NCBI RefSeq assembly: GCF_052425735.1
Contig: NC_135768.1
Coordinates: 16,926,001 to 16,990,000, forward strand
Reading direction: 5' to 3'
Source of the DNA: Oculina patagonica
Taxonomy: Eukaryota
Length of the DNA: 64,000 nt
Part shown: positions 18,355 through 63,660 of the stretch, in pieces
Numbering within the stretch: position 1 is the stretch's first letter
Layout: every line of letters starts with the position of its first letter
Made by a program: the position numbers and the translations under genes
Notes under the pieces: model-generated
What the model was told of the DNA's origin: nothing
Seen by the model: the letters and a program-made list of their open reading frames with translations, nothing else
The model's database searches: none

Positions 18355-19260
18355 ATGTGGAACTATTCCAGCGAAACTGGAACCAAATCCACAGCAATGA
18401 ATGGTTCACAGATGTTCAAAAATTCTTCAATGCCTGAGACTATCGTCATCATAAACTGTGTTATAAACGCTCCATTGATGCTGACATCCATTATTGGCAA
18501 CACTCTGGTGCTAGCCGCCATTTTGAGAACTCCTTCGCTTCGTTCACCGTCCATAATGTTTCTTAGCAGTCTGGCTGTTTCAGACCTTCTCGTTGGTTTC
18601 TTCGTTCAACCACTTTATATTGCTAGTGGGTTAACAAGAATTCATCACCTAGACAATTTGTGGTTCATGGTATCATTTGCTACATGTGGTATTTCTCTTT
18701 GTTCCATAACAGCTATCAGCGTCGATCGCTTTTTGGCTCTTCATTATCACATGCGCTACCCGACCTTAGTGACTAGATCCCGCGCCATTTGGACACTGGT
18801 AATAATGTGGATTTTAATTTTTCTTCTGGCGGGAATTTACTATTTAGATCGGAATGTATATTTTCTGGTTATAGCTCTTGGAGTTGGCTTATGCCTCTTA
18901 ATCTCGATCGTCGCTTACATAGGAATTTACCGAATAGTTCGTCATCAGCAATTACAAATTCATACTCAGCAGCAAGCAGTACAAGCAGCGACTGAAGAGG
19001 TCTCCAGTTTAAAGCAGCTAAAGAGGAGTGCATTAAACTCTTTTGTGTTTTTCATTGTAATGGTTTTATTCTATGCTCCAATGTCTGTTGCAATGTCTCT
19101 TTATCTCATCACAAAAGACTGGGAACAAGCTTGGAGCTTTGCAACAACGGCAGTGTTCATGAACTCGGCAATTAATCCGTTGCTTTATTGCTGGCGGCTT
19201 GGGAAGCTACGAAAAGCAGTTGTAAAGACAGTGAAGAAAATGTTGTCTAAACAACCATAA
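18355..19260 (+). CDS. Intronless class A GPCR, 301 aa (R2)
   Basis: 7TM; GNTLV, LAVSDLLVG, DRFLALHYHMRY, NSAINPLLYCWR. Confidence 0.96.
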   Translation: MWNYSSETGTKSTAMNGSQMFKNSSMPETIVIINCVINAPLMLTSIIGNTLVLAAILRTPSLRSPSIMFLSSLAVSDLLVGFFVQPLYIASGLTRIHHLDNLWFMVSFATCGISLCSITAISVDRFLALHYHMRYPTLVTRSRAIWTLVIMWILIFLLAGIYYLDRNVYFLVIALGVGLCLLISIVAYIGIYRIVRHQQLQIHTQQQAVQAATEEVSSLKQLKRSALNSFVFFIVMVLFYAPMSVAMSLYLITKDWEQAWSFATTAVFMNSAINPLLYCWRLGKLRKAVVKTVKKMLSKQP

Positions 19261-20019
19261 ATAACAGAAAAAACACTCTTTGACTCTTACATGGACTTAA
19301 TTGTTACTGCATCAAAAGGTTAATGATACCACAAAAAACTGAGGAACTATATTTTAATGACATCAAGAACAGTAATCAAAAGAAATGACTATTTCTTTGT
19401 GTTTTACATGTTATTAAATGTCATTATGTTTACATTTTAATCTAAAATCAATTTGTCCAACAGTAAACACATAAAATTTAATTTAAATAAAGATTACCTC
19501 TTGGACGTATTTATGATGTGAGCTGGCAATATTATACTCATCAACAATTTCCGGCTAAAGTGTCTCTTCACCTGTCTATATCTACGAAATTTATGTGACA
19601 TTTCATCCGATGTTACGTACAGAAACTATAAAATTAAAAATTATAAGTACCTTTTAATATACCAAAATAGTTTGCTAACTTGTTTAGTTGATGTTAGCAA
19701 TGTTCACATTAATGCAAAAAAATGATGTCTGTATACTACTATTCTTTGAAGATAAAAGATACACTCGAAAGAACAATATCTCTCTTTCATTAAAACCTTC
19801 CCATTAACCTTTGTAGGGGGTTTTCACAGAGACCATCTTGGCACAACAGGATGCGTGTGCATAAAAATTGAAGTCATATTGCCAAAATTAATGAGAGAAA
19901 TTTTTTTTTGTTCAATATGTCCCTCGTGAGCCGGTGACGTCATTTTACGATTTTTGTACTACTAAAAACAAACTAAAATTAACCCAGAATGGTGTAGGGA
20001 ATTGTTGGCTTAGTGGGAA

Positions 20020-20150
20020 GGTGGTTCTAGCTTTTAATTTTGTAGACGAAACTTTATATTGTTACTATTTAAATGAAAGCTATTGAGTAGTACATTCATG
20101 CGGTACTGTTCATTATGTTGTAAATGTGTGGTTCTAACTTTTAAAAAAGT
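20020..20150 (+). repeat. Remnant of the ~104-bp AATGAAAGCTATTGAG.. minisatellite-type repeat
   Basis: AAATGAAAGCTATTGAGTAGTACATTCATGCGGTACTGTTCATTATGTTGT..GTGGTTCTAACTTTTAA, with GGTTCTA.CTTTTAA recurring about 108 bp apart; recalled as abundant in scleractinian genomes. Confidence 0.55.
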
Positions 20151-25084: not shown

Positions 25085-25987
25085 ATGAACTTCAGCTTGA
25101 ACGAATCATTGAGTGATGACCAAACGGAAACTCAGGCAAACGAGACTCTTGGGAATATTGTTATCATAAACTGCGTATTAAATGCACCATTGATGCTCAT
25201 ATCCATTTTGGGGAACTTTCTAGTATTCACTGCAATATGGCGAACTGTGTCTCTCCGATCACGGCCTTCCATGATGTTTATCTCAAGCCTCGCTGTCACA
25301 GACCTTCTTGTGGGTTTGATAGTCCAGCCAATATATATTGCAAATTTATTGACATCAGTTCGTCTGCTTAAATTGCTCTCGTCAATGATGGCCTTTGCTG
25401 CCTGTGGGGTCTCACTCGGTACGATGGCTACCATAAGCTTTGATCGATTTTTAGCCCTCCATTATCACATGCGATACGCGGCTATAATGACGTCATCCCG
25501 TGCAATATCTGCATTAGTAACAACATGGGTGATCATCAGTCTTTTATCTTGCCTTGTATTTTGGGATCCTATAACTTGCATGTTTATTATGGCCATTTTA
25601 ATCAGCTTCTATCTGATAATTTCTGCTTATTTTTACGTCAGACTTTATCGGATTGTCCGCCGGCATCAGATACAGATTCAGCATCAAGATTGCAATCCAC
25701 AGGCCTTAAATCCGCAGGCTTTGAATCAAAAGCGTTTGAATAAGAGTGCCTTCAACACGTTTGTATTTTATACCTCTACAATTCTATGTTATCTTCCAAG
25801 GTTTATTTCTGTACCTTTCAGTGATCCTAACACACATGACGAGACAGCATGGATCTTTGCAGATACTCTGGTATTTATGAACTCGGCCATAAATCCAGTC
25901 TTGTACTGTTGGCGTCTTGGCGACCTTCGAGCTGCTGTCGCAAAAGTCCTAAGAAATATGTTCTGCAAGCAAACCGTGGAAAACTGA
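25085..25987 (+). CDS. Intronless class A GPCR, 300 aa (R3)
   Basis: 7TM; DRFLALHYHMRY, CYLP, NSAINPVLYCWR; NPQAL duplicated in ICL3. Confidence 0.96.
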   Translation: MNFSLNESLSDDQTETQANETLGNIVIINCVLNAPLMLISILGNFLVFTAIWRTVSLRSRPSMMFISSLAVTDLLVGLIVQPIYIANLLTSVRLLKLLSSMMAFAACGVSLGTMATISFDRFLALHYHMRYAAIMTSSRAISALVTTWVIISLLSCLVFWDPITCMFIMAILISFYLIISAYFYVRLYRIVRRHQIQIQHQDCNPQALNPQALNQKRLNKSAFNTFVFYTSTILCYLPRFISVPFSDPNTHDETAWIFADTLVFMNSAINPVLYCWRLGDLRAAVAKVLRNMFCKQTVEN

Positions 25988-27597: not shown

Positions 27598-28524
27598 TCA
27601 ACTTTCTTGCCTTTTTCTACAAAACACTTGTCTTCCTGTCTTTACGACTGCCGTTCGAAGTTCTCCAAGGCGCCAACAGTACAATAGTGGGTTGATAGAC
27701 GAGTTCATAAATACAACTGTGTCAGCAAAGTTCCAAACCTTTGTCCAATCTTTCTTCGAAATTGCATATAGAGACAACGAAACCAACATAGGCAGATAGC
27801 ACAGAATAATAAAAACGTAAAATATAAATGAGTTTATGGCACTTCTCTTCAATCGCAACATGTTCATGTTTAATATATTTTCACCAGAGCTTTGTATTGC
27901 TTGCTGTTGAACGTGAATTTGCGATTGATGTTGTTGAACTATTTGAAAAATACGAGTGTAGGAATACGTGGAGATTAGGAGGCAAACACAAATGGCAAAA
28001 CATATGCCTGCAAAAAAGATAATTTTGTTCCAAAAGTAAAAACCTGATAAAATGGACACCACGATCCAAGTTGTTACTAGCACACGGGTGACTCGAGGAA
28101 TGGTAACTGTAGCAGCATATCTCATGTGGTAGTGAAGGGCTGCAAATCGATCGAAGCTAATAGCTGTTACTGTGCAAAGAGAAACTCCGCATAACGAAAA
28201 TTGTATTATTTCGGTAATTCGTAATGCAGGGTATACACGTACTCTTAAAACTTCCGTAGCAATGTACAGTGGTTGTACGATGGCTCCAACAAGAAAGTCT
28301 GAAACAGCCAAACTGCAGAGCAATGTTATGGACGGTGAACGAAGCGAAGGCGTTCTTAATATGGCGGCTAGCACCAGAGTGTTGCCAAAAATGGATATGA
28401 GCATCAACGGAGCATTGAGGACACAGTTTATGATGAGAATTGGGTTAAGATGATTATTTCCTTTCGTATTTGAGAAGTAACTTGCTGATTCAGAACCATT
28501 CTTAAGTGACGTGTTGTTGATCAT
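27598..28524 (-). CDS. Intronless class A GPCR, 308 aa (R4)
   Basis: 7TM; DRFAALHYHMRY, NSSINPLLYCWR. Confidence 0.96.
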   Translation of the reverse strand: MINNTSLKNGSESASYFSNTKGNNHLNPILIINCVLNAPLMLISIFGNTLVLAAILRTPSLRSPSITLLCSLAVSDFLVGAIVQPLYIATEVLRVRVYPALRITEIIQFSLCGVSLCTVTAISFDRFAALHYHMRYAATVTIPRVTRVLVTTWIVVSILSGFYFWNKIIFFAGICFAICVCLLISTYSYTRIFQIVQQHQSQIHVQQQAIQSSGENILNMNMLRLKRSAINSFIFYVFIILCYLPMLVSLSLYAISKKDWTKVWNFADTVVFMNSSINPLLYCWRLGELRTAVVKTGRQVFCRKRQES

Positions 28525-31072: not shown

Positions 31073-31225
31073 NNNNNNNNNNNNNNNNNNNNNNNNNNNN
31101 NNNNNNNNNNNNNNNNNNNNNNNNNNNNNNNNNNNNNNNNNNNNNNNNNNNNNNNNNNNNNNNNNNNNNNNNNNNNNNNNNNNNNNNNNNNNNNNNNNNN
31201 NNNNNNNNNNNNNNNNNNNNNNNNN
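31073..31225. other. Assembly gap (153 N) with low-quality flanks
   Basis: Run of N; inflated homopolymers at ~30780-30860 and ~31226-31400. Confidence 0.99.
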
Positions 31226-31443: not shown

Positions 31444-32358
31444 TTATTCTTGATATGTCTTAGTACATGGCATCTGCCTTGCTGTCTTTATTACTGCTGC
31501 TCGAAGTTCGCCAATACGCCAGCAATACAGAAATGGATTGATAGAGGAGTTCATAAACACTACCGTGGTAGCGAAGCCCCATTCTGTTTTCAGGTTCTTG
31601 TATGGCAGTTTATAGAAACTCAAAAAAATATACATCGGCGTATAACACAGAATTAAAACAATGTAAAACACGAAAGTATTCATTGCACTTCTTTTCAACC
31701 GCATTGTGTTTAAAGTATTGCCAGCATTGGAACTTTGCACTGCTTGTTGTTGGATGTGAATTTGTGACTGGTGCTGACGAACTATTAGATAAATTCTGAT
31801 GTAAGAATATGTGGAAATTACAAAAGAAACGACAATGAAACCCGCAGCCAAGTGGTTAAAGACGTGTTCATTTCTAAAGTGAAAATTTGCCAATGCGACG
31901 ATTGTCAACCAAAACGTTATTACGGTAAAACTGACTCGGGATTTAGTCACTAAAGTAGTATATCTCATGTGATAGTGAAGAGCCATGAACCGATCCACAC
32001 TTATGGCTGTTATTGTACATAAAGAAATCCCACATAACGAAGACCCAGTTATCTTCGAAAGACGGTATAAAACGTTCTTGTCATTCGTAACTTCCTGAGC
32101 AATGAAAATCGGTTGAGCAATGACACCAACAAGAAGATCTGAAACAGCAAGACTGCTGAGCATAATCATCGAAGTTGATTGAATGGAAGGAGTTCTTATT
32201 ATGGCGGCCAATACCAAAGCGTTTCCCAGGATGGATATGAGCATCAGTGGAGCGTTAAGACCACAGATTATGATGACAGTTGCATCAATTCTAGTGTGTT
32301 CTTCATAATTTATATGAGATGCTGATTCGCTCTTTCCATTATCAATGTGGTTCATCAT
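31444..32358 (-). CDS. Intronless class A GPCR (R5); likely start MMNH at 32358
   Basis: 7TM; DRFMALHYHMRY, NSSINPFLYCWR; the ORF-track start at 32388 is a TTG. Confidence 0.95.
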   Translation of the reverse strand: MMNHIDNGKSESASHINYEEHTRIDATVIIICGLNAPLMLISILGNALVLAAIIRTPSIQSTSMIMLSSLAVSDLLVGVIAQPIFIAQEVTNDKNVLYRLSKITGSSLCGISLCTITAISVDRFMALHYHMRYTTLVTKSRVSFTVITFWLTIVALANFHFRNEHVFNHLAAGFIVVSFVISTYSYIRIYLIVRQHQSQIHIQQQAVQSSNAGNTLNTMRLKRSAMNTFVFYIVLILCYTPMYIFLSFYKLPYKNLKTEWGFATTVVFMNSSINPFLYCWRIGELRAAVIKTARQMPCTKTYQE

Positions 32359-33842
32359 ATTGTCCTTTTTTATCTGCTGGCCGGGCAAGCAGATGAAACT
32401 GTCTTGAACAGCGGCTCTCGGGACCCCGGCTTATATTTTACGATCTTACTGCCACGTTTATTGTCTAACACCGCTCATGCTTGGTTTTGTATTACCTTAT
32501 TTAGTTGTTAAAGGTCTATGGTTATTACTAGTACTTTAATTAATCAAATTTTCCCTTATGAGTTGACACATTAAACGCCTAAATACGCCTCTGACAGCCG
32601 TAGAAATTTTGTTTATCTTTGTGCGTTGTTCATCACTCAATGTGCCTATATAATCAAAAATTTAGTAAGGTCAAGCGTTTTGCAGCTTTAATCGTGAAAA
32701 TTAGCATGAAAAAAGGAGGAACAAAATTAAATGATATAGAATACATAAAACTACGCCCTGAGCATATAATTTATCTAGCGTTTTAATTAAAATTTGAAGC
32801 TATCCTTATAAAAGTTATTGGGCGTCAAACATATTTTGCGTTGTGTCGAGGTTTCAGACAGACCCAGATTGTGGAATTTGGTTGGGATTTTGATGCAGAA
32901 ATACAATGCATTCGCATTTTCTGTAGCGTATGGGTTGTCTATATCTAAGCAACAATCATGATAACTAGTACATGTATAGAAGTAGTGATTATTGTAGATA
33001 TAAAAAGCGTACCCAAACTTCATCTCAAACGGCACCATTTTATTAATGGATTACAAGTTCCTTAAGCCTACTAGCAATACACGTGCATTCTGATCTATAT
33101 ATTTTTACAATTTTGGTTGTAATGTTATAACTTCGATTATACAATACATTACTCGCCTTATAGAGATGGTGTCGCATTTTTATTCCTATTTTTATTCACA
33201 TTTTCAAAGTTATTCCTGTTCCTAGCAGAATTCAACACCTTCCAATAAGGTAACTGTCCCATCCTTAATTTTTGCATGGGCATCTAAAGTGCTTTCTGAA
33301 TGATTGCGACTTACACTGGCAGATTTGTATTAAAGTTTTTTTAGTCTTTACGAAATTAAATGAAATTTCCCTTAGGTAAAAAGTAAATAAAATATAAGCG
33401 CAAAGAAAGGAGTGTCAAAATTGACCACTAAGTAATTACGAAGCGCGAAGCGACTGATCTGTGAAACTACCACAAAATAAGTATGTAAAATAAAACATGT
33501 ATTTTTACAATAAGAGAAATCTCACAAACGCGTTATACTTTACACACGAACATACTGAAATCATAAGATCATGCGGGTTTTTTTGTCATCCCTCAGTTAG
33601 GTTATACAATTAGTTCTCATTTCAATTTTTTTTCTATATTACACCAGACCTAATTTTGGCAATAATCCACAAATTGTTAGATCACAGTGATCTAGGGAAC
33701 AGAGTGAACCAACACACGTAGCTTATGGGCCATCCTTTACCATGTGTTTGTCCATATAATTAAAAAGACATGCATCCTGTCCTTAATTTGGAATCCATAC
33801 TTACGGTTGTACGGTTACATCAAATATTTGGTTGCTTTTATT

Positions 33843-34799
33843 TTAGGTCTGACCTGTTTGTTTACATAGTCATCTGCCTTGCTGTCTTTACAACTGCCGT
33901 TCGAAGTTCCCCAAGACGCCAGCAATACAAAATTGGATTGATAGAGGAGTTCATAAACACTACCGTGGTAGCAAACTTCCATTCGATTTTCCAGTGCCTG
34001 TATGATGCTCCGTAGAGTGTCAGTAAAACAAAGGTTGGAACATAACATGAAATTAAAACGATATAAAACATGAAAGTGTTTATTGCACTTCTTCTTAATC
34101 GCGCCATGTCTAAGTTACTACCGAGCATTAGAACTTTGCACTGCCTGTTGTTGAGCTTGAATCTGTGACTGATGCTGACGAACTATTAGATAAATTCTAA
34201 TGTAAGAAAATGTGGAAATTATAAGACAAATGACAATTAAAACTGCGATTAACTGATTAAGTAAACGCTTGTTCCCCAAAGTAGAAGCTTGACAAAGCGA
34301 AATTTGTCAACCAGATCATCAACACAGCAAAACTTGTACGAGATTTAGTAACTAAAGAAGCATATCTCATGTGATAATGAAGGGCCGCAAATCGATCCAA
34401 AGAGATTGCTGTTATTGTAGCTAGTGAAACTCCACAAAACGAAAGAACTGCCACTTGTGCAAGATTGGATACGAAAACACTGCTCATTCTGGTAAGTTCA
34501 TTGGCAATGTAAAGCGGTTGAGCTATGACACCAACAAGAAGATCTGAAACAGCAAGACTGCTGAGCAAAGTCATTGAAGTCGAGCGAATGGAAGGTGTTC
34601 TTATAATGGCGGCCAGCACCAAAGCGTTGCCCAGAGTGGAAATGACCATCAATGGCGCATTCAAAACGCAGATCATGATAGCAGTTTCATCAATATTAGT
34701 GTAGCCCTGAAAGTTTGAAGCATAATCTGATTCATTCCTGCGTTCAGTTTGGTTTGTTGTATTTCCATCACCATGTTTGGTAGAAAACAAATCAGACAT
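33843..34799 (-). pseudogene. Full-length GPCR with three +1 frameshifts (R6)
   Basis: Alignment to paralogs needs removal of one base at ~34275 (TTT GGG [G] AAC), ~34126 (AAT [G] CTC GGT) and ~33869 (A[C]TA TGT). These could be assembly errors. Confidence 0.85.
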
Positions 34800-35662
34800 T
34801 GTAAGATTTTCTTGACAGTGCAGGTGGCGGTTACCAGTTTTCACTTTCCACACTTTGTGAATTGAAAGACGTTTGTTGCATAAGACAGTTAATGCTCGCT
34901 TTTATAAAACCTACACGAGTTTTCTCAATAAATGTCGCACTTTAGTCACATTATGTATGTCGGCAAGTCGGCAACAGACCCGTTGTGACTTACTTTAAAC
35001 CATTTGAACTGGAATCTCAACGATCTCGATTTCAAAGCAAGCGTTCTTCAAGGTTCGTACAATTTCCTTGGCCTTCAAAAGAAATTACTTTCAAAGGTGA
35101 AGATTTGATTAAAGCAAGTTGCGTTGTGCTGTTTAATTAATCTTAAGGTAGTCCTTTCTCTTCCGTTTGCCACTCGATTCGTTTATGAAGTCAAACAATC
35201 GTCTTTGTACATCTGTTCTCAAGAATATTAACATCAAAAAGAGGAGCGAAAACTAAATAAATTGAAAATACGAACACCACGCCGACCATTAAAACATATT
35301 TATTTAGCAGTTCATTAATAACGCGAAGCGACAATTCTATATAACAGTTATATCTGGGCGGAGATTAATCTTGTTTTAAGCGCAATATCACGCCGTTTTA
35401 GCGTCTTATTCAGTCGAATAATTATATTGAGCACTTTTATCAAGAAACACGGGCGGTCCAGTCTCTTTCGATTTTCTGTAGAATGTCAAAAATCCGAATC
35501 CATTCAACTTTGTCAATGTTCAGTAGTTTTCAATAATAAAACTGAAAAAAACTCTCGTTGTTTTCTGTAGGACATGCCGTGCGGGGTAATGATTGCCGAT
35601 TGTAAATAAAGGAATTCAATGTTTGCAATGCGATTGAAAACCTTTCTGCTAATCTCTATCAG

Positions 35663-35701
35663 GCGATGAAGACTTAAGCAGTATAACAGCCGAAACGTCG
35701 C
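35663..35701 (+). mobile_element. Degenerate Penelope-type hammerhead-like motif (duplicate at 40189-40227)
   Basis: GCGATGA-AGACT...AGCC-GAAAC-GTC; the core is mutated relative to CUGAUGA. Confidence 0.4.
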
Positions 35702-35782
35702 AATCAATGCCTCAAGGCGACTCCATCGTGAGACAAACGAATAAACGTTAATGCTCTCATCAAAAAACATTTTTCTATTACA

Positions 35783-35920
35783 ACAGGGCTGAACTGGTTC
35801 GAATGATGGATACCCTATTCAGTGGATAAATCGCTATCCGCCTGTGGATAAATGTTAACAAAACATTCTACGCTATCCACTAGATAACGTTATCCATCCT
35901 TTGAATAACTGGACCACGAC
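35783..35920. mobile_element. Short GGATA/TATCC-repeat MITE (duplicate at ~40284-40420)
   Basis: CTGGTTCGAATGATGGATA...GTGGATAAATCGCTATCC...TTATCCATCCTTTGAATAACTGG, a palindromic organisation. Confidence 0.75.
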
Positions 35921-35985
35921 CTGGGCCTCACTGTAATCCACGAAACTTTTGTTTATCGTGATAGAAACATGAAGCTTCTTCCATT

Positions 35986-36940
35986 TTAGTCCTGACCTGT
36001 TTGGGTACAAAGAATCTTCCTTGCTATCTTTACAATTGCCGTTCGAAGCTCGCGAAGACGCCAACAGTACAAAATTGGATTGATAGAGGAGTTCATAAAC
36101 ATTACCGTAATAGCAAAGTCCCATTCTGTTTTCCAGTCCTCGTATGATGTTCCATATAATGTCAATAAAATATAAATTGGAAAATAACATAATATTAAAA
36201 CGATATAAAACACGAACGTATTTTTTGCACTCCTTCTCAATCGCATTAAGTTAATGTTATTGCCAAGGTTGGAATTGTGCACCGCTTGTTGTTGAGCGTT
36301 GATCTGTAACTGATGATGACGAACAATCTGATAAATTCTGACGTAACAAAAAGTGGAAATTGTCAAACATATGACATTCAAAACTGCGACTAACAGGAAA
36401 AAGGCACGCTCGCTCCAAAGGTATAAACCTATCAAAACGAAGATGATCGACCAAATCATCCCTACAGTACATTGAACACGGGATTTAGTAACCAAAGCTG
36501 GATATCTCATGTGAAAGTGAAGGGCCATAAATCGATCCAAAGTGATGGCTGTTATTGTACCTAACGAAATTCCACAAAACGAAACTACTGTTATTTCCGA
36601 AAGAGTCTAGGACAACATTGTTGTATTCGGTAAGTTCGTTGGCGTGAAACAGCGGTTGAGCTATGACGCCAACAAGAAGATCTGAAACAGCAAGACTGCT
36701 GAGCATAATCATCGAAGTTGAGCGAATGGAAGGAGTTCTTATTATGGCAGCCAATACTAAACCGTTGCCTAGAATGGATATGAGCATCAAAGGAACATTC
36801 AAAGCACAGTTAATGATTACAGTGGCATCAATACCAGTGTGATCTTCGAAGTTTAAACCATAATCTGATTCGTTCTTGCCTTCATCGGTTTGGTTTGTCG
36901 TATTGCCATATTCATGTCTGGCAGAAGGCAAGTCGGACAT
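35986..36940 (-). pseudogene. Full-length GPCR with a 2-nt deletion at the top of TM3 (R7; sister of R10)
   Basis: R10 has TAC CAT CTT TCG and R7 has GAC --T CTT TCG at ~36605; the two halves lie in different frames. Confidence 0.88.
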
Positions 36941-37931
36941 TGTACAAATGTATCTAACAGTGCAGATGTCGGTTACCAGTTTAAATCATTATAACAGTTA
37001 TAACACCGCTGACGCTGGCTTTGATGTTGCCTACAGAGTTTCGTCGATCAGTTTCGCTCGTACTTCACATTATAAATGTCATTATGTATTGTAGTCAACA
37101 GACTTTTTGTGAAATCCTTTGAAATCATCGGTACTGAAAAAATAAATTATTTCGAATTGAATGCGAGCGTTCTTCGAGATTAATATAACTTCAATAGCCT
37201 TCCAAATAAATTATTTTGAAGAATAAATGGATAACTTTTTAATTTTTAGGTGGACTTTCTTCTTTTGTTTACCACTCCATTCGTATATGCAAGAAAAACA
37301 ATCGCCTTTTTTCATCTCTTCTCAAGGAAATTAACATGAAAAAGGGAATGAAAACTAAATTGAAAATACGAACACCACGCCTACCCAAAAAAAAATTATT
37401 TATTTTTCACTTCATTAATAATAGGAAGCTTTAATTAATTCTACAGAAAAGCTATGAAGGGCTATGTCATGCAGATTTAGCGTCTTAGACAGTTAGATAT
37501 ACTTAGCATTTTGATCTCTCGTTTGAGTTTCTGCAGATTGTCCAAAATCCAATTGTATTCAACTTTGGCCAATGTTGAGTTGTTTTAAATAAACTAAACA
37601 AAAACCGTTTTTTAGTAATGGCTATGCTGTGCAGTGTAAGGATTGTTGATCACCAAAAAATAAAGCAATTCCGTTTTGGCAATGTGATTGAGTGCATTTT
37701 GGTATAGAAAATAACATACTAAGAAAATCAGTAGAACTATTCTGGAGCTTTAACGGGTGGAATCAACTGCAGCTGAATGTGTACATGTTTATCGTAACAT
37801 ATTATTAACGGCAGTGCGACTTTTTCTTTTTTCAATTCTTCTTCAATCCTTCCCTCTGCCTTTTTTCAGTCAGAGCTTGCTGCTGTGACCCGTTTTTGTT
37901 ATAGGAATGTTCCCAAAATGTCTATTAAATT

Positions 37932-38857: not shown

Positions 38858-38858
38858 T

Positions 38859-45779: not shown

Positions 45780-46726
45780 TTAGTCCAGTCCTGTTCATTT
45801 GCATATAATCTGCCTTGTTGTCTTCATAACTGCTGCTCGAAGTTTGCCAAGACGCCAGCAGTACAATACTGGATTGATAGAGGAGTTCATGAGCACTATC
45901 GTAATAGCAAAGTTCGATCCTTTTATCCAGTTCTTGTATGAACCTCGGCCATATAACGTCAATATGATAAACATTGGAAAATAACATAATATTAAAACGG
46001 TAAAAAACACAAACGTATATTTTGCACTTCTTCTCAATCGCATCATGTTAAAGTTATTGCCAAGGTTGGAACTTTGCACTGCCTGTTGCTGAGCGTCAAT
46101 CTGTGACTGATGGCGACCAACAATTCGATAAATGCTCGCGTAGCAAAAAGTTGAAATTGTCAAACAGATGATATTCAAAACTGCGATTAAAAGGTGAAGG
46201 CACGCTCGTTCCAAAGGTTGAAACTTGGCGAAACGAAGATTGTCACCCAAACCATCAAAACGATAAGCTGGGTGCGGGATTTAGTCACTAAAGTAGCATA
46301 TCTCATGTGATAGTGAAGGGCCATAAATCGATCCCATGAGATTGCTGTTATTGTAGCTAGCGAAACGCCACAAAGCGAATACCCTGTCATGAATGCAAGA
46401 TTGGATACGAAAACATTGCAATTGTTGGTAATTTTGTTGGCAATGAAAAGTGGTTGAGCTATGACACCAACAAGAAGATCTGAAACAGCAAGACTGCTGA
46501 GCATAATCATGGAATTTGAGCGAATAGAAGGAGTTCTTATTATGGCGGCCAGCACCAAAGCGTTGCCCAGAATGGATATGACCATCAATGGAGCATTCAG
46601 AACGCAGATTATGATGAGAATTGCATCAATACCAGTATAGTCCTGAAAGAGTGTTTCGTGATTGCCTTCAAAGGTTTGGTTTCTAGTACTGCCTTCATCA
46701 TGTCGTGTAAAAAGTAAATCAGACAT
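45780..46726 (-). pseudogene. Full-length GPCR with a -1 frameshift and a late nonsense codon (R12)
   Basis: GCC TT- CAC at ~46197; TGA at 45795-45797 falls five codons before the family stop; start MSDLL at 46726. Confidence 0.87.
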
Positions 46727-48152
46727 TGTAAGATGTTCTTGACAGTTCAGATGGCTGCAATAAACCACCAGTTTACACTTTTCACACTTGGCAAACTGAC
46801 AGGGAGGTCTGCTGCATAACACAGTTAATACTGGCTTTTATACAGCCTGCCGAGTTTTCTCATTTAATCTCGCCCTTTTGTCACATTATGTGTGTGCCAG
46901 TCAATAGACCCTTTGTGACATCTTTTAAAATCATTGGAATTGGCATCTAAATGATTTCAAATTTAAAGCAAACGTTCTTCGACATTCGTATAATTTCCTT
47001 TGCGGTCTATAGAAATTACTTTTAAGGGTGAAGTTTTGATTAAAGCGAGTTGTGTTAATAGTTTTTAAGATAGACGTTTTCTTTCTGTTGAGCACTCTTT
47101 TAATATATGTCGGACTAAAGATTGATTAAACAGAAGAGGGACCATTTTATAGTTTTAGTGATGAGATTAAATTAAAACTTTTATCTTTTGTTTGCCACAC
47201 AAAGTGACCATAATAAGTTAGACAAACTCTTTTCTTTTATTGCAGAAAAAAATAAACATCAAAAGGAAAAACAAAATTAAAGAAATCTACAACACACAAA
47301 TACGCCCTGGATGTATTTATTAAGACATTTTAATAATAATACGAAGTTGTCCTCAAAACAGTAATTGAGCACTATCCTATTTTACATAGCTCTGTTATAT
47401 GTTTAGAGACTCAGGTCTTGGAAAATGGTTGAAATTATCATTGTTTTGCCCTGATAAAAGGCACAATAAACCCGGTACACTGACTAGGAACAGTCCCTTT
47501 TTTAACAAAAGACGCATTGAATTAATATAACAATCAGACCTAATTACTTATTCAGCGCAGTGTTAATGGGTGTTCCAGTCAAATAATGTCAGCTCAAACG
47601 TCATCTTTTATTGTAATTACAATTTTACTCTAAACTGAAAACTAATTTCTTTAAAAGCTATATGCATTAAAATTTATACTTAGCGATTTCGGTATAAGTT
47701 TTATAAAAATTCGATAATACAAAAGTACATTTCAAAAGGAAACTGTCCTATGGTTTTTTTGAACTGGTCTTTAAAGCGCTTTAAAAAAATTTTTTTATCT
47801 ACATTTTAGTAATGAAATATTTTGGAAAATCCTCCTAAAATATTTACAGTAGAAAAATTATAGACATGTTGGCCATAAAGGGCAGATGTGCTAAACACAC
47901 TAAGTCATGTCTTTTTTTATATCAACAATGTACGATATTTACGGAAAGAAGACCAAACCTTTAATCTGGTTTTCATCTCGAAACATTTGTCTATAACACC
48001 CGACCAGAGCTTGCTATAATTCGCAATTTTTGTTCACTGTGATAATTTATAAAGAGAAAAGAGGAACAGCATACATAGCAAATAGCACCTTACCAAAGTT
48101 AAACTAACGTCTTCGTTTGTTCCGAAATATCCAACAGTTAGTTGCTTCCATT

Positions 48153-49070
48153 TTAGTCCTGACCCGTTTGCGTACCTATCAACTGCCTTGCAGTCTTTAT
48201 TACCGCCGTTCGAAGCTCCCCAAGACGCCAGCAATACAAAATTGGATTGATAGAGGAGTTCATAAACACAACCGTGATAGCAAACTTCCATTCTGTTTTC
48301 CAGCTCCTATTTGATGCTCCGTAGAAAGCTAATAAAATATATATTGGAAAATAACATGAAATTAAAACGATATAAAACATAAAAGTGTTAACTGCACTTT
48401 TTCTCAATCGCGCTATGTTAAAGTTACTGCCAAGATTGGAACTCTGCACTGCCTGTTGTTGCGCTTGAATCTGTGACTGATGATGACGAACTATTAGATA
48501 AATTCTGATGTAAGAAAATGTGGAAGTTATAAGGCAAATGCCAATGACAACCGAAGTTAACAGCTTAAGAGCACGCTCGTTCAAAAGGCTTAAACTTGAC
48601 ACAGCGAAGATTGTCAACCAAATCATCATTACAACACACCTTACACGGGATTTAGTAACTAAACTAGCATATCTCATGTGATAATGAAGAGCCATGAAAC
48701 GATCCAAAGTGATGGCTGTTATTGTACCTAGGGAAACTCCACAAAGCGAGAGCACTGTTATCTTTGAAAGGTTGACGACGAAAACATTGTTTTCGTCGGT
48801 GAAGTCTTTGATAATGAAGAGTGGTTGAGCTATGACACCAACGAGAAGATCTGATACAGCAAGACTGCAAAGCATCATCATCAAATTTGAGTGAATGGAA
48901 GGAGTTCTTATAATGGCGGCCAATACCAAAGCGTTGCCCAGAATGGATATGAGCATCAATGGAGCACTCAGTCCACAGTTTATGATGGCTATTGCCTCAT
49001 TACTATTGTGCTCTTCAAAATTCGAATGATATGCTGTTTCGTTTTTTCCGTTATCAGTGTGGTTCATCAT
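48153..49070 (-). CDS. Intronless class A GPCR (R13); likely start MMNH at 49070
   Basis: 7TM; DRFMALHYHMRY, NSSINPILYCWR. Confidence 0.95.
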   Translation of the reverse strand: MMNHTDNGKNETAYHSNFEEHNSNEAIAIINCGLSAPLMLISILGNALVLAAIIRTPSIHSNLMMMLCSLAVSDLLVGVIAQPLFIIKDFTDENNVFVVNLSKITVLSLCGVSLGTITAITLDRFMALHYHMRYASLVTKSRVRCVVMMIWLTIFAVSSLSLLNERALKLLTSVVIGICLITSTFSYIRIYLIVRHHQSQIQAQQQAVQSSNLGSNFNIARLRKSAVNTFMFYIVLISCYFPIYILLAFYGASNRSWKTEWKFAITVVFMNSSINPILYCWRLGELRTAVIKTARQLIGTQTGQD

Positions 49071-50354: not shown

Positions 50355-51272
50355 TCAGTCCTGGCCTTTCTGTGTACATGTCATCCGTCTTGCTGTCTTC
50401 ATAACTACCGTTCGGAGCTCGCCAAGACGCCAGCAGTACAATATTGGATTGACAGAGGAGTTCATAAACATAACCGTTGAAGCAAACTTCCATTCTGTTT
50501 TCCATCTCTTGACTGATGCTCCGGAGAAAGTCAATAAAACATAGATTGGAAAATAACATGAAATTAAAACAATATAAAACATGAAAGTGTTTATTGCACT
50601 TCTTCTTAATCGCGCGATGTTTAAGTAATTGCCGAGATTTGAGCCTTGCACTGCCTGTTGTTGAGCAAGAATCTGTGACTGATGCTGACGAACTACTAAA
50701 GAAATTCTAACGTAACAAAAGGTGGAAACTATAAGACAAATTGCAATGATAACCGCGTGTATCAGGAATAGTGCACGCTCTTTCCAAAAGCTTAAACTTG
50801 ACAAAGCGACCATTATCAGCCAAATCATCACGACAAGACACTGGACACGGGATTTAGTAACCAAAGTAGCATATCTCATGTGAAAGTGAAGGGCCATAAA
50901 TCGATCTAAAGTGATGGCTGTTATTGTACCTAGAGAAACTCCACAAAGCGAGACCATTGTCATCTGCGAAAGACTGGCTACGCTCACATTGCTCTTTTCG
51001 GCAAGTTCTTTGAAAATAAAGAGCGGTTGAGCTATAACACCAACAAGAAGATCTGAAGCAGCAAGACTGCTGAGCATAATCATCGAATTTGAGCGAATGG
51101 AAGGAGTTCGTTTTATGGTGGCCAATATCAAAGCGTTGCCCAGAATGGATATGAGCATCAATGGAGCGTTTAAAACACAGTTTATGATGACAGGTGCATC
51201 AATACTGGCGTGGTCTTCAAAATTTGAGCCATAATCTAAATTGCCCTTGCCTTCACTGCTGTGGTTCGTCAT
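50355..51272 (-). CDS. Intronless class A GPCR, 305 aa (R14)
   Basis: 7TM; DRFMALHFHMRY, NSSVNPILYCWR. Confidence 0.95.
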   Translation of the reverse strand: MTNHSSEGKGNLDYGSNFEDHASIDAPVIINCVLNAPLMLISILGNALILATIKRTPSIRSNSMIMLSSLAASDLLVGVIAQPLFIFKELAEKSNVSVASLSQMTMVSLCGVSLGTITAITLDRFMALHFHMRYATLVTKSRVQCLVVMIWLIMVALSSLSFWKERALFLIHAVIIAICLIVSTFCYVRISLVVRQHQSQILAQQQAVQGSNLGNYLNIARLRRSAINTFMFYIVLISCYFPIYVLLTFSGASVKRWKTEWKFASTVMFMNSSVNPILYCWRLGELRTVVMKTARRMTCTQKGQD

Positions 51273-54631: not shown

Positions 54632-55543
54632 TTATTCTTGCTCGCTTTGTTTGCATAACATTTTTCTCGATGTCTTCACAGCTGCTCTTCGAAGCTCACG
54701 TAAACGCCAGCAGTACAAAAATGGATTGATGGAAGAGTTTGTAAACACCAAGGTCGTAGCAAAGTTCCACTCAGCTGGCCAGGGCTTGTGCGAGATTCCA
54801 TGAAGCGTCAGCAAAATGTACAGTGGAAGAAAGCATATTACCAAAATTATATAAAAAATGAAAGTGTTTATCGCACTCTTTTTCATTCGCAATATATTTA
54901 TGTCATTTTCAGCACTTGACCATTGCACTACTTGTTGTTGAGCATGAATTTGGAACTGATGTCGACGAACAATGCGATAAATTAAGATGTAAGAAAATGT
55001 GGAAATCACAAGACAGATTCCTGTAATAACAGCTATGATAAAGTGATATACAAAATCATTCAAAAAATAAAACACCGATGAGAAGAAGTTTATACACCAA
55101 ATTATAACCATCGTATATTTGACACGAGATATAGTGACTATATTAGCATATCTCATGTGATAGTGAAGAGCCAAAAATCGATCCACACTTACGGCTGTTA
55201 TTATCAACAGGGAAACTCCACAAAACGAATAAGCCAATGTATCCCATAGAATGTCTAAAACACGGTTTTCTGTGAGTTCCTTAACAATATAAAGCGGTTG
55301 AGTAATGAGACCAACAAGGAAGTCAGAAACAGCGAGACTGCAGAGCATAATCATTGAAGTTGAGCGAATGGAAGGAGTCCTGATTATGGCGGCCAATACC
55401 AAAGCGTTGCCAAAAATGGCCATGAGTATCAATGGAGCATTGAGGATACAGTTTATGATGACAATAGTCTCATGGGTAGCAAGGTCGTCAGCGTTTTGAT
55501 GGTCGTCGCTCTTATTAAGTGTCATGTTACTCATTTCACTCAT
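54632..55543 (-). CDS. Intronless class A GPCR, 303 aa (R16)
   Basis: 7TM; DRFLALHYHMRY, CFLP, NSSINPFLYCWR. Confidence 0.96.
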   Translation of the reverse strand: MSEMSNMTLNKSDDHQNADDLATHETIVIINCILNAPLILMAIFGNALVLAAIIRTPSIRSTSMIMLCSLAVSDFLVGLITQPLYIVKELTENRVLDILWDTLAYSFCGVSLLIITAVSVDRFLALHYHMRYANIVTISRVKYTMVIIWCINFFSSVFYFLNDFVYHFIIAVITGICLVISTFSYILIYRIVRRHQFQIHAQQQVVQWSSAENDINILRMKKSAINTFIFYIILVICFLPLYILLTLHGISHKPWPAEWNFATTLVFTNSSINPFLYCWRLRELRRAAVKTSRKMLCKQSEQE

Positions 55544-58233: not shown

Positions 58234-58914
58234 GCCCGTTCCAATGTGCCATATATAGAGAAGTGGTGTTTGAGAAGATGGTCGAATCTTAGGTCTCATC
58301 TTCATCGACTCGGATGGTATGTGGTGGCTATGACCGCGGTAAACACGCATCTTTTGTGATGGAAACCACTATTTCTACTACTCCCGTCTACTTTTCTAAC
58401 AAATTGTACCCACAAAACTTAGCTCGGGGTGGCGAAACCGATGTTTTTCGAAAACTTCGTTAACACTAATTAATGTTGTCCGACGTTTCCATTTTGCTAA
58501 CATCATCACCAAGGCAAAAAGTGATGACAGTTTTATCGTAGTGTGAATATAAATGAGTGGAAACAGTGTAATAGACATTTTTCTTTTGTGTTCCTGTAAG
58601 CATGGACATTGAATCAACTTCGTTAACAGCGTGTTTTTTATGCCAATTCTTTTATACTCCGCTGCTTAATGAGAATAGGGAAGAAAAGGAGGCACTGTTC
58701 TTACTCGTAACGATTTATATTGGGAATTCGTAAGCGTTACTAAGCTACCAAACAACTTTCGCACTTGAAAATGTTCAGTTGTATGTGACATGTCACACGA
58801 CATGACGAAATGTGGGGTCGATAGTACTAGTCATCTGCGTTAAAATTTAACACCATGCGCATTGTCACTGTGGGTCACCAATCAGCAGATAGTTCGAACA
58901 GGCATGCGTAAATG

Positions 58915-59071
58915 CGTACGGGTTATAGTTTCATCCACGCCTCGAATACGCCAACTATACAAACATGTATTGATGGACGAGTTCATATAATCAACAGTGA
59001 CAGCAAAGTGCCACACATTACCATTCCTTGAATGATAGTTCAAAAATAGTCATCAGTAAAACGCATATTGG
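58915..59071 (-). pseudogene. Decayed GPCR TM6-TM7-helix 8 remnant (R18) abutting the R17 stop
   Basis: PICVLLMTIFELSFKEW / NVWHFAVTVDYMNSSINTCLYSWRIRG, with one frameshift. Confidence 0.8.
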
Positions 59072-59960
59072 TTAATTATCTTGAGTATTTTTACATAACA
59101 TTTGCCTAACTGTCTGCACAACTGTCATTCGAAGCTCTTTTAGACGCCAACAATAGAGAATTGGATTGACAGATGAGTTCATGAATACAACAGTGTCTGC
59201 AAAGTTCCACACGTTTGTCCAATTCTTGTGTGAAATGGTATACAGGCACAACGAAACAAGCCTTGGAAAATAACACAGAATAATAAACATATAAAATATG
59301 AAAGTGTTAATAGCACTTCTCTTCAATCGTGCAATGTACAAAACATTTGCAGCAGCCGGACCTTGCACAGCTTGTTGTTGAACATGAATCTGAACATGAT
59401 GTTGATGAACAATTCGAAAGATTCGAAAATAAGAAAACGAGGACACCACGAAACATATGCCAATACTAACAAATGAGATAACAAAATAGTTAATCCTATT
59501 CCAGAAGTAAAGACTCGATGTCAGAGAAGCCATAAGCCACATTATTGCGACGGTATAAATGGCACGAGGAATGGTTACCATGGTAACATATCGCATGTGG
59601 TAATGAAGGGCAGCAAATCGATCCATGCTGATGACCGTCATGGTGAAAAGAGAAACTCCACACAAAATAAATCCCATAATTTCACAAATAAGAAATACAG
59701 ATAATTCGTCTGTCAGTTCTTTAGCATATAAAGCGGTTGTACAACGAGCCCAACAAGAAGATCTGAGACAGCCAAACTGCAGAGAAAAATCATGGACGGT
59801 GAACGAAGCGAAGGAGTTCGCAATATGGCGGCTAGCACCAGAGTGTTGCCAATAATGGATATGAGCATCAATGGAGCATTCAGGACACAGTTTATATGAT
59901 GACGGTACTTTCGTGACTGTCTTGATTCGATTCGTTCCTTGTTCCGTTAGTGAGATCCAT
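59072..59960 (-). pseudogene. Full-length GPCR with +2 and -1 frameshifts (R17)
   Basis: True start MDLTNGTRNESNQDSHESTVII at 59960 hits TAA because of an extra TA at ~59895. TM1-TM2 (NCVLNAPLMLISIIGNTLV..LAVSDLLVG..QPLY) lie in another frame until a 1-nt deletion at ~59726. Confidence 0.88.
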
Positions 59961-62757
59961 GTTTGTAAAACAGATATCCCTTGTAACCTGTCCAAACTTC
60001 TAATTCAAGCAAAAAGCCAAATAATATGGGAGATATATAATAGGTCTAGCTGCGCCTCTCTTTAGTGCTAATTGCCAAACCTAGGAGACGGAAACTCGGC
60101 GATTATGTGAGGTAAGTGAGATAATTGAGCCAGCGGAAAGAACAAATTTTGTCCGTTTTCTTTTACAGCTGTCAAAACTAGAGCACACAGCAGGCCGTAA
60201 TTTTCAATTATAAGTTAAAATTGCATCTCAAGAAACCTGATACTAAAACCACTATATTCTAATCAGAAACATCAACTTATAGCTCAGCTACAACATTTAA
60301 AATTGTTTTTCCCCTTCTTAGAACCACCTGTCCAGTTTATTTGCTCACTTTAAATTCAATTAACGCGAGCCGTCTAAGTGTTTGAGCATAACCCAGACAC
60401 CGATTTGTTTAACCACAAGTCAAGTGAAAGTGGTAAATTTATAATTTTGGTTTGTCATTGCTTGCGCACGCTCCCAGGGCAGTTTATAGAAAATTACACC
60501 GCGCTTGCGTAACCAGATCTGATTGCGAGTTTGCCTAATAGTCGGTCGCTTGGTAATGCCAAATATTGATAGTTGTGTGCTGGGGAGTTTAGCTAGTGTC
60601 AGTAGTGTTTAGTATTTGAAAATGGAAACCATCTGGCAGGTGTTTTGCTTTTCTACCAGGTCAAAATATCAACTTTCGTTACTAATTCGCGAACCCTGAA
60701 GTTCAAAACCCAGCTAATAACGATTGCGTTTTTCCTGCCGTATATCAAAAATATAGCGACTGCGAAACAAACCTTGAAAAACAGAAGCAAGCAAAATGGA
60801 TAGAAATCTACCAATCACAACAGCCAGAGGTGACCTTTTGAACCTGTTGGGGTGAACTTCTGATTCGTGAGGGGTCTGCTTTAAAAATTGACGGCAGCGA
60901 AAAACGTAACCGTTGACTGAGCAGAGTTCGTGTGTTATTGAAAACTGCAGTAATGTTCCTTTTTCTATCAAGAAGATATCTAATTCTTTTGATGATTATG
61001 GGAATTTCTTTAGCTATCTCTTGGGGATACATTGTTTTACTAAGAGACAAAAAAAATCAGTCCGATCAGATATAGCTGATGGATTTAGGTATGTATCAAT
61101 TTGTTACTCAATCGTGGCAGAAAAGCCTAAATTGTTGGATAATACAAAGAATGGAACCCAGTCAGTGCAAAGTTCCAGTGCTAGGAAAAACAAACTCGTG
61201 TGGGAAGACAAATAATTATTATTCTAAGCACTGTTTAGTATCGTTTTAATTGATTTTTCCAATGTTCTATTTAATCTGTGATAACATATAAGGAGCCTCG
61301 TTTAAAGGCTAGAAAACAAAATGGAAATTTGTGCTGTCCTTGTAACATGTTTTCGTCCACCAATCTTTTTTTGTATTGTGCGCTGACGTCTTAGCACTTG
61401 AAAGCGGACAGTTGTGAGAGGGCAACGAAGTAGATATCATGTACTGTGTTACTAACTTTTTTCACCAATAATGGCTTAAAACGCATTACGATAATGGAGT
61501 GATAAAATATATTTATGTTTTTGTTAGTAAATTAAAATAACAATTAAATCTTAAATGCACAGTTATGAGAAATTGCCATGAAACAAAAGTGCTACGATTC
61601 TCAGGACCTTAGCACGCTAAAAAATTTTTCCGTGGGTCGGTGGATCAGCGGAAGAGTTTTAAGTCGAGTCATGATTATGTGACATTTAAAAAGGTCCCCA
61701 GTTAATATACTGCAGACAACATACATTTGTTTAACTTTCACGTACTTCGATTGACGTATGTCAAGTCAGTTTGAAATGAAACATGTTTCCTATTCAATAG
61801 CAAATATCATTTACAAGCCGTGTCGGGCTAAAAATCACATTCACCATTGTTTATTTTATCTGTACAGTTTGAACATCTCATTGTAATTTACCCTGAAAAA
61901 CCATTTTTGGAGAGGGTGTCTTAAAGACACCGATACCCAATAAAAATGATGATAAATTCGGATCCTTAACAAAAAGCACGTGAGGAAACTAGCTTTCGAA
62001 ATGTAAGTCAACATCCAAATTCTTTCTACAAGTCACCATATAGTTCCAACAGTGCTAGTTGGAGGAATTCGATCACACGTCAAGTATTGTAGAAATTCCT
62101 TTTTTTCTTCTTTTTTATTATTTTTCTATATATGCATGTCCTATAGGTTTTGATTATTTTTTTAGCTTTGCTGTGTAACGCGCTACAAAATGTTGCTATA
62201 TTCACGCTTTACTGGTCTCTAAGAGTCATCCATAATACTTACACTATCGATGTTTTTGTATTGTACAAAGAGGAAGCATCAAGATGGTCTTCCTGATATG
62301 TCTATGACCGGTTTCGTTTTAAGTTTAGCTAATTTTGACTGGAAGAAACTTTTTTGGTCCCGATCTCTTATACAGGTGCTTGTGGATTGAGCCCAAAAGT
62401 AAAAAAATAACTGCGTCATCTGGAATTGGATATTTTCCTTCTAAAAGTCACAGGAAATTATTAAAAGTTAAATGAAACTCTCGTCGAGTCATATCAAAAT
62501 TGTATTAGGTCATCTGCATAGAATTACCAATTCTAATTATGTCAAGTTAATGAGTGAAATACAGAAAGTAAGGAACAGGAAAAAGGAAGCTCATTAAAAC
62601 ATAGACGGCTGTTTCACAAATACAGTCATTTACGTACAACTGTCGGGTATTATAGCTTCCAGTGTTTCAAAACAACTTTTTGACTTGCCATCGGCTCAAG
62701 GAAGACAGATATTAACATTACTTTGGCATTTTGGGTAAGGAAAGGGCAAAAGGCACT

Positions 62758-63660
62758 ATGATGAACTACACCTACAAAGACAAGAATGGACCAGTCATTC
62801 AAGACTACAATATGCGTGAAACATTTGTCATCATAAACTGTGTTTTGAACGCTCCATTGATGCTCATATCCATTCTGGGCAACGCTTTGGTATTGGCCGC
62901 AATAGCAAGAACTCCTTCCATTCGCTCAACTACAACGATTATGCTGTGCAGTCTGGCTGTTTCGGATCTTTTTGTGGGTCTCATCGCTCAACCGCTTTAT
63001 CTTGCAGATCTGCTTACGACGGGAAGTTTTGTAGCCGATCTGTCGATAATGGTAGGTTTCTCTGTATGTGGAGTGACCCTATGGACCACAACTGCGATTA
63101 GTGTGGATCGCTTTATGGCTCTTCACTATCACATGAGATATGCTACTTTAGTGACTACATCCCGTGTCAGATATTCTGTAATAATCATATGGTTGATCAA
63201 CATACCTTTTTCAGGGTTCTACCTTTGCAAAGAGCGCGAATATAAATTTACTATCGCAGTTATGACTGTGACATGTCTGGCAATTTCCACATTTTGCTAC
63301 ATTCTAATTTATCGAATTGTTCGTCGGCATCATTCGCAAATTTTTGCGCTACAGCAGACAGTGCAAAGTGTGGCTGCTGGAAATGACGGTTTACAGATCG
63401 CAAGACTGAAAAAAAGTGCATTAAACACTTTCGTATTTTACATCTTTTTGATTATTTGTTATATCCCAATGTACATTTTATTAACCCTCTATGGAATCTC
63501 TTACATCGAGTGGACGATAGAATGGAACTTTATTACCATTCTAGTGTTTATGAACTCAGCAATTAATCCATTTTTGTATTGCTGGCGTCTTCGCGATGTC
63601 AGAACGGCAGTAGTAAAGACAGCAAAGCAGATGTTATGTAAACAAACAGACGAAAACTAA
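62758..63660 (+). CDS. Intronless class A GPCR (R19); likely start MMNY at 62758
   Basis: 7TM; DRFMALHYHMRY, NSAINPFLYCWR; divergent in orientation from R17. Confidence 0.95.
   Translation: MMNYTYKDKNGPVIQDYNMRETFVIINCVLNAPLMLISILGNALVLAAIARTPSIRSTTTIMLCSLAVSDLFVGLIAQPLYLADLLTTGSFVADLSIMVGFSVCGVTLWTTTAISVDRFMALHYHMRYATLVTTSRVRYSVIIIWLINIPFSGFYLCKEREYKFTIAVMTVTCLAISTFCYILIYRIVRRHHSQIFALQQTVQSVAAGNDGLQIARLKKSALNTFVFYIFLIICYIPMYILLTLYGISYIEWTIEWNFITILVFMNSAINPFLYCWRLRDVRTAVVKTAKQMLCKQTDEN

Follow-up and report, generated by a model that had tools for sequence, protein, structure and literature searches.

We analysed a 64 kb stretch of the genome of the coral Oculina patagonica (contig C11 of genome G000, positions 16926001–16990000, GC content of 36.8 %), referred to here as the window, which contains 11 intact, intronless genes for G-protein-coupled receptors (GPCRs) of class A, each a single open reading frame (ORF) of 296–314 aa. 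The window also holds six to seven broken copies of the same gene, identified from the ORF list and by tblastn, which are about one third of all its copies. Taken together, the results probably reflect a receptor family with a conserved signalling half and a variable ligand pocket, in which young duplicates are under positive selection and the genes of the window are older, with a ratio of nonsynonymous to synonymous substitution rates (omega) of around 1.

Conserved and variable halves of the receptors

A previous reading of the window, made from its letters alone (the sequence-only reading), held that the extracellular half of transmembrane helix (TM) 3 differs in every paralog. This was confirmed, because the ten 14-residue strings that it listed occur verbatim, one per intact ORF; the account, given for positions 18355–63660, covered neither the 11th intact paralog, g05, nor the broken copies. 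The strings correspond to Ballesteros–Weinstein (BW) positions 3.24–3.37, taking the motif DR[FY] as 3.49–3.51, and the site described as cycling among residues with charge swaps is residue 102 in the numbering of gene g43, BW 3.29, with F, S, E, K, E, Q, K, Q, D and I across the ten genes. Mean pairwise identity among these ten paralogs, the measure used in all the comparisons of this section, was 36.7 % for the TM3 strings and 57.4 % for the whole seven-transmembrane (7TM) core (residues 26–298). The top of TM5 was also as variable as had been claimed, its outer half showing 24.1 % identity and the least conserved 14-residue segment of the core starting at residue 164. Extracellular loop (ECL) 1 and the outer half of TM4 were likewise variable, with 12 % and 31 % identity, respectively.

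The cytoplasmic face had been described as nearly invariant, which is correct for intracellular loop (ICL) 2 (80.3 % identity, 9 of 16 columns invariant), for the inner part of TM7 (88.3 %, 10 of 14 columns invariant) and for the motif HQxQIxxQQQAVQ. The description does not fit the central part of ICL3 (28 %) or helix 8 (H8; 55 %). ICL3 as a whole showed 48 % identity, and its N-terminal part, with 66 %, is really the cytoplasmic extension of TM5 that carries this motif.

The features of the window are listed below, with coordinates counted from its first nucleotide; 14-mer denotes the segment encoding the TM3 string.

4742–5632, minus strand: g05, 296 aa, 11th intact paralog and the most divergent; 99.8 bits to 7tm_1
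18355–19260, plus strand: g18, intact, 301 aa; 14-mer at 18649–18690
25085–25987, plus strand: g25, intact, 300 aa; 14-mer at 25367–25408
27598–28524, minus strand: g27, intact, 308 aa; 14-mer at 28186–28227
31073–31225, no strand: assembly gap of 153 N, 219 bp from the g31 stop and 2.5 kb from the g27 start
31444–32358, minus strand: g31, intact, from first ATG; 14-mer at 32029–32070
33871–34853, minus strand: broken copy with frameshifts, in three tblastn pieces; 78.7 % DNA identity to 45744–47056
35986–36940, minus strand: broken copy, duplicate of g40, with one frameshift and two overlapping ORFs; 83 % DNA identity to 40934–42588
37928–38859, minus strand: two 3′ gene fragments head to tail, g43-like (37928–38388) followed by 38392–38859
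40967–41887, minus strand: g40, intact ORF, 306 aa, with DQF instead of DRF (R3.50Q); 14-mer at 41552–41593
43626–44534, minus strand: g43, intact, 302 aa, reference for numbering and for the structural model; 14-mer at 44205–44246
45795–46822, minus strand: broken copy with one frameshift and two ORFs
48153–49070, minus strand: g48, intact, from first ATG; 14-mer at 48738–48779
50355–51272, minus strand: g50, intact, 305 aa; 14-mer at 50940–50981
54632–55543, minus strand: g54, intact, 303 aa; 14-mer at 55217–55258
59072–59995, minus strand: broken copy, C-terminal two thirds in frame and N-terminal part frameshifted; extra fragment at 58903–59013
62758–63660, plus strand: g62, intact, from first ATG; 14-mer at 63031–63072

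The products belong to class A. The six genes tested matched the Pfam model 7tm_1 (PF00001) with 84–102 bits (cut-off, 30.5), and an AlphaFold2 (AF2) model of g43, with a predicted local distance difference test score (pLDDT) of 78.7, contains seven helices (residues 17–54, 61–90, 95–136, 139–162, 164–206, 212–247 and 257–281) followed by H8 (283–297). With this model, Foldseek returned TM-scores of ca. 0.75 against beta-1 and beta-2 adrenergic, D1, A2A and 5-HT1A receptors. The BW anchors are N45 (1.50), D73 (2.50), R123 (3.50), W150 (4.50), C178 (5.50), P241 (6.50) and P275 (7.50) of g43, and the signature residues of the class (N1.50, D2.50, D/E-R-Y, W4.50, P6.50 and NPxxY) are all present and near-invariant, with the variants DRF for DRY, CYFP for CWxP, Cys for Pro at 5.50 and, in g40 alone, DQF. 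The AF2 model places the end of TM4 at residue 162 and the start of TM5 at residue 164, so that ECL2 is practically absent (ca. 1–3 residues); the Cys3.25 bridge is absent too, position 3.25 being G, D, K, L, Y, V or A. A glutamine-rich motif, R-H-H-Q-x-Q-I-x-x-Q-Q-Q-A-V-Q (g43 residues 194–208), is kept in all paralogs; it is predicted to form the cytoplasmic extension of TM5 and looks distinctive for the family.

The best matches among solved relatives were the histamine H2, beta-1 adrenergic, cannabinoid and melanocortin receptors (E-values of 1e-16 to 1e-13); a phmmer search of the PDB gave ca. 5e-16 for the H2 and beta-1 receptors, 2.5e-14 for CB1 and 7e-14 for MC3R. The close homologs are cnidarian clusters named automatically as ‘MSH receptor-like’, ‘histamine H2 receptor-like’ and ‘adenosine A2b-like’. 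Two more specific identities were considered and not accepted. A vertebrate-type odorant receptor is not indicated by the model 7tm_4 (PF13853, gathering threshold 27 bits), for which g27 and g43 scored below threshold (25.6 and 23.3 bits) and g18, g25 and g62 gave no match; only g05 passes it, with 38.5 bits. A melanocortin receptor was not accepted either: in the PDB search the match to this group was no better than that to others, and the sequences lack two of its features: the E2.60/D3.25/D3.29 motif was not found, position 2.60 being a conserved L or I (omega of 0.16) and 3.25 and 3.29 being hypervariable, and residues 248–256 contain no conserved Cys that could form the intraloop disulfide of ECL3.

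Selection in young and old members of the family

Selection was examined in four gene sets: the 11 window genes; a core clade of seven of them; the window plus 18 flanking paralogs from 16.65–17.23 Mb (29 genes, the neighbourhood set); and the L clade, 24 younger paralogs from C11 (18.9–23.5 Mb), C5 and C9, which in the tree is nested among the genes of the window. Pairwise synonymous divergence (dS) was 0.45–0.8 within the core clade, above 1.2 to g05, g18, g25 and g27, and 0.05–0.3 in the L clade, and whole-gene omega was 0.35–0.54. We used our own GY94-F3x4 codon pruning engine, whose log-likelihood under M0 matches the IQ-TREE value to the third decimal, to fit M1a/M2a, M7/M8 and M8a/M8, together with an alpha/beta grid of the FUBAR type and a branch mixture resembling MEME.

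Positive selection was evident in the L clade, where the likelihood-ratio test (LRT) statistics for the 7TM core were 156.7 for M1a/M2a and 146 for M8a/M8; for all 53 genes the corresponding values were 86.5 and 90.4. The full-length fit of the L clade assigned about 7 % of sites to an omega of ca. 3.5, and the tops of TM3 (1.52) and TM5 (1.47) both had omega significantly above 1. Sites with a posterior above 0.9 were 1.32, 2.64, 2.65, one in ECL1, 3.25, 3.28, 3.29, 3.37, 4.56, 4.60, 5.35/36, 5.36/37, 5.42/43, 6.51, two in ECL3, 7.36 and 7.39, and the per-position omega was ca. 3–8 at variable positions, including 3.29, with very strong likelihood-ratio support. The same core sites were recovered when synonymous rates were allowed to vary. 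The same posterior was exceeded at two cytoplasmic positions, 5.63 and 6.28 (g43 residues 191 and 219), which are close to the ends of TM5 and TM6, which are G-protein contacts in other receptors, and residue 219 was also flagged by the FUBAR-like, FEL-like and MEME-like tests.

These statistics were calibrated with simulations. With data simulated under M8a for the L clade, M1a/M2a and M8a/M8 gave false positives in 1 of 32 replicates, with maxima of 10.3 and 13.7, and M1a/M2a gave none in 24 null replicates of the neighbourhood set. M7 versus M8, the comparison that the sequence-only reading had proposed, turned out to be unreliable on these data: 63 % and 21 % of null data sets exceeded the threshold, with values of up to 50. 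We thus relied on M1a/M2a and M8a/M8 and discarded the M7/M8 statistics, which had seemed significant in every set (134 for all 35 genes and 44 for the neighbourhood set). In simulations of the neighbourhood set some M8a/M8 values came out negative, as the optimiser for M8 stalled at times, and conclusions on that set rest on M1a/M2a. Apparently selected sites in the N-terminal tail (residues 1–25) were set aside, because this segment is unreliably aligned and unconstrained (omega of ca. 1.07); dropping it lowered the M1a/M2a statistic of the neighbourhood set from 8.7 to 3.2. The PHI screen for recombination was not significant in any set (p = 0.10 for the L clade, and 0.13, 0.36 and 1.0 for the others).

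The location of the selected sites relative to the ligand cavity was assessed with a pocket class defined a priori as the ten ‘key’ cavity positions of class A receptors, 3.29, 3.32, 3.33, 4.60, 5.35, 5.39, 5.42, 6.55, 7.35 and 7.39 (PMC2650788, Table 1), with the register of TM5 that HMMER gave on alignment with the beta-1 adrenergic receptor. This class had an omega of 2.73 in the L clade (2.19–3.32; LRT of 66 against omega = 1) and of 1.07 in the window (0.78–1.43), versus 0.39 for the other 75 residues of the outer helix halves. Five of the ten key positions were among the selected sites (L clade, p = 2.5e-4; all 53 genes, p = 5e-6), and 18 of the 20 selected in the L clade are in the outer half or in extracellular loops (p = 4e-7). 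On TM3, TM4, TM5 and TM7 they follow an i, i+3/4, i+7 spacing, which corresponds to one helix face.

The cytoplasmic face of the window genes is under strong purifying selection, with omega values of 0.13 for ICL1 plus inner TM2, 0.16 for inner TM3 plus ICL2, 0.27 for inner TM5, 0.19 for inner TM6 and 0.20 for inner TM7 plus H8; TM1 gave 0.14. Values were 0.68 (0.53–0.87) for the top of TM3, 0.81 (0.63–1.02) for the top of TM5 and 0.78 for the centre of ICL3. Averaged over the long branches of these genes, the ring of pocket residues evolves at about the neutral rate.

These results suggest a mechanism in which the transducer-facing half is kept nearly constant (N1.50, D2.50, DRF and ICL2, the stretch by which TM5 extends into the cytoplasm, the inner part of TM6, NPxxY and the beginning of helix 8), whereas the residues ringing an open pocket without ECL2 (2.64, 3.25, 3.29, 4.60, 5.35–5.42, ECL3 and 7.36/7.39) are free to change. 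In young duplicates, positive selection with omega of ca. 3 drives the pocket residues apart, most likely retuning ligand specificity while the output pathway stays constant. The paralogs of the window, with dS from 0.45 to saturation, are older and would carry the diversity generated by that process, with no ongoing or pervasive positive selection. From the conservation of the cytoplasmic face, a common G-protein coupling can reasonably be inferred.

Several observations weigh against this interpretation. In the 11 window genes we found no class of sites with omega above 1, with core LRT statistics of 0 for M1a/M2a and ca. 0 for M8a/M8; the 7TM core of the seven-gene clade (0 and 1.7) and of the neighbourhood set (3.2 and 2.4) were not significant either. 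Selection like that of the L clade (7.3 % of sites at omega 3.5), when simulated on the window trees, was detected with a power of 100 %, with M1a/M2a statistics of 15–86 with seven or 11 genes and of 82–319 with 29 genes, which indicates that pervasive strong positive selection did not operate in the window lineages. The adaptive diversification of the window's own genes is an extrapolation from their relatives. The sequence-only reading, which proposed diversifying selection for them, places the variation correctly and holds for the family as a whole, through its younger clade, but is not demonstrated for the genes on which it was based. Pocket-facing positions were judged from BW numbering and literature lists instead of model coordinates, and the register of TM5 is ambiguous by one residue; counting TM5 from C178, pocket omega falls to 0.72 for the window and to 1.65 for the L clade (LRT of 14.7), and selected sites match three of the ten key positions (p = 0.029 in the L clade and 0.004 in the 53 genes). 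Selection at 5.63 and 6.28 in the L clade (loci L002–L030) is on the cytoplasmic side, this face is not frozen everywhere, as g40 has Q for R3.50, and branch lengths were fixed at their M0 estimates.

The null result in the window would also be expected from relaxed constraint only, with the diversity of its pocket rim being neutral drift and selection in the L clade a separate episode, which we consider rather unlikely. This explanation is favoured by the window statistics and the power just described, by a pocket class with omega indistinguishable from 1 and by omegas of 0.83, 1.20 and 1.07 in the window sets, none different from 1, at the L-clade sites under selection. The MEME-like test fits it too, with 7 of 302 sites in the neighbourhood set at p < 0.05, no excess over chance. 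Additionally, a third of the window copies are pseudogenes. Nevertheless, strong selection acts on the same rim positions in the L clade, whose place in the tree is within the subfamily of the window, and the highest single-site omegas in the window, although none survives correction for multiple tests, are again at 5.39 (4.3), 3.29 (2.5), an ECL3 site (2.2) and 3.25 (2.1). Intact ORFs with conserved signalling halves also argue for receptors in use, and the pocket of a receptor in use is rarely fully neutral. The window omega of ca. 1 fits bursts of selection after duplication followed by constraint, as well as plain neutrality, and a further possible source of the null is a poor fit of the model at sites that are saturated and limited in alphabet, outside what the simulations capture.

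It is very improbable that the family's omega above 1 is an artefact of gene conversion, misalignment or saturation. Tandem paralogs are prone to conversion, M7/M8 produced the false positives described above and the deep branches of the window are saturated (dS > 1.2); however, the PHI test detected no recombination, the L clade is almost without indels and has low dS, its signal survives in three segments with separate trees (LRT of 73, 28 and 22.5), the M1a/M2a and M8a/M8 statistics are more than ten-fold above the null maxima (10–14), and the model with synonymous rate variation points to the same sites. We give even less credit to the possibility that lipid or solvent is what the variable residues face, and that they are merely tolerant of change, unrelated to ligand binding. 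In class A GPCRs the constraint on loops and on outer helix halves is generally lower, and here the outer half of TM4 is variable as well. Yet the other residues of the outer helix halves have omegas of 0.39–0.47, versus 1.0–1.4 at the pocket positions from the literature, selected sites coincide with 3.29, 4.60, 5.35, 5.42 and 7.39, and they overlap the ligand and Ca2+ contacts 3.25 and 3.29 of MC4R, in which E2.60, D3.25 and D3.29 jointly hold Ca2+ and the peptide ligand (PMC8563958). The omega of the pocket class, the helical spacing and these contact positions lead us to reject the lipid- or solvent-facing alternative.

Structure of the array and decayed copies

The window is a piece of a megabase-scale tandem array of a large cnidarian family of class A GPCRs undergoing birth-and-death evolution. 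The genome of O. patagonica contains at least 130 copies, 115 of them without internal stops; this is a lower bound, because 130 copies were scored out of 4194 first-look candidates. Most of the scored copies are in several dense clusters of C11, between 16.3 and 23.9 Mb, and others are scattered over C1, C2, C3, C4, C5, C7, C9 and C14. The assembly gap listed above is intergenic, flanked on one side by g27, which starts at 28524, and on the other by g31, which stops at 31444. Neither an ORF nor a receptor-like tblastn match of the window adjoins it, so that frame continuity across the gap is irrelevant for the ten paralogs, and at most it may hide one further copy.

Within the window a block of three genes has undergone partial segmental duplication, with 33807–38859 corresponding to 40044–47056. 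The duplicate pairs are 35512–37606 and 40044–42588 (83–87 % identity), 37928–38388 and 43616–44076 (92.6 % DNA identity), 38392–38859 and 45580–46050 (87.9 % DNA identity), and 33807–35125 and 45744–47056 (79 % identity). Every receptor copy within the block at 33.8–38.9 kb is broken or truncated. A contig from another coral assembly (L051; GCA_044670265.1, JADOBR010062414.1) shows 93.7 % DNA identity over 2.4 kb to window positions 35997–38388; its g40-like copy is an intact gene of 317 aa (P0016) whose counterpart in the window is frameshifted, and its g43-like copy has a frameshift near the 5′ end. P0002 and P0016 of this contig were considered as orthologs of the intact genes of the window and rejected, because the match is to the pseudogenised duplicate block, which makes an ortholog-based test of selection impossible; L051 was the only close match, and we found no other close cross-species orthologs of the intact genes.

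Among the 53 aligned paralogs, g40 is the only one without Arg3.50, and it has changes in LDQF/ISQG close by; its product may be non-signalling, or the gene may be becoming a pseudogene. The window can be described as an older stretch of the array that is partly in decay, in which one third of the copies are broken and an intact ORF lacks R3.50.

Significance and comparison with known systems

At the receptor level, little is understood of the way in which corals perceive settlement cues, prey, microbes and symbionts. This analysis supplies a testable map, a small set of pocket positions in which the diversification of the family resides, and locates a young clade with active selection at ca. 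19.7–23.5 Mb of C11, as well as an older array, the window, of diverse receptors in which positive selection is no longer detectable. It also advises caution, because here hypervariable positions did not by themselves mean omega above 1 and M7/M8 gave 21–63 % of false positives with such data. The conservation pattern and the analogy with other class A expansions (PMC11886862) suggest a chemosensory role or another role in perceiving environmental cues. More tentatively, the family may be a cnidarian repertoire for cues from settlement sites, prey, microbes or symbionts, independent of the odorant receptors (ORs) of bilaterians, whose specificity ring (2.64, 3.25, 3.29, 4.60, 5.35/5.39/5.42 and 7.36/7.39) would be in adaptive turnover in young duplicates and largely settled in the older window.

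Tandem amplification of GPCRs in corals has already been described, in a work whose relevant passages leave function open (Noel et al. 2023, PMC10236652). The rhodopsin-like GPCR orthogroups reported there as amplified in corals by tandem duplication appear to be the same phenomenon at the genome scale, although those passages treat copy-number amplification and not selection on pocket sites.

The coral family resembles the melanocortin receptors, and MC4R in particular (PMC8563958), in a very short ECL2 without Cys (four residues in MC4R), in the lack of the Cys3.25 disulfide and of Pro at 5.50, in a size of ca. 300 aa with short loops, and in that its most variable sites, 3.25 and 3.29, are ligand and Ca2+ contacts in MC4R; many members are also annotated automatically as ‘MSH receptor-like’. 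In contrast, the E2.60/D3.25/D3.29 motif and the conserved ECL3 disulfide of the melanocortin receptors are absent from the coral family, whose similarity to them (E-value of ca. 7e-14) is no better than that to the H2 and beta-1 receptors (ca. 5e-16).

The chemoreceptor expansions, such as vertebrate ORs, TAARs, T2Rs and V1Rs, and those of echinoderms and lophotrochozoans (PMC11886862), share with the coral family the intronless tandem arrays, birth-and-death evolution and pseudogenes, as well as more variable outer helix halves, positive selection on pocket sites and a conserved signalling half. Unlike the lophotrochozoan expansions and vertebrate ORs, with an ECL2 of 25–30 residues (PMC11886862), the coral receptors have one of ca. 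1–3; moreover, the coral members in the window show omega of ca. 1 instead of above 1. Variability of the outer pocket over a conserved signalling half is a well-known kind of pattern, of which this coral array is a new example.

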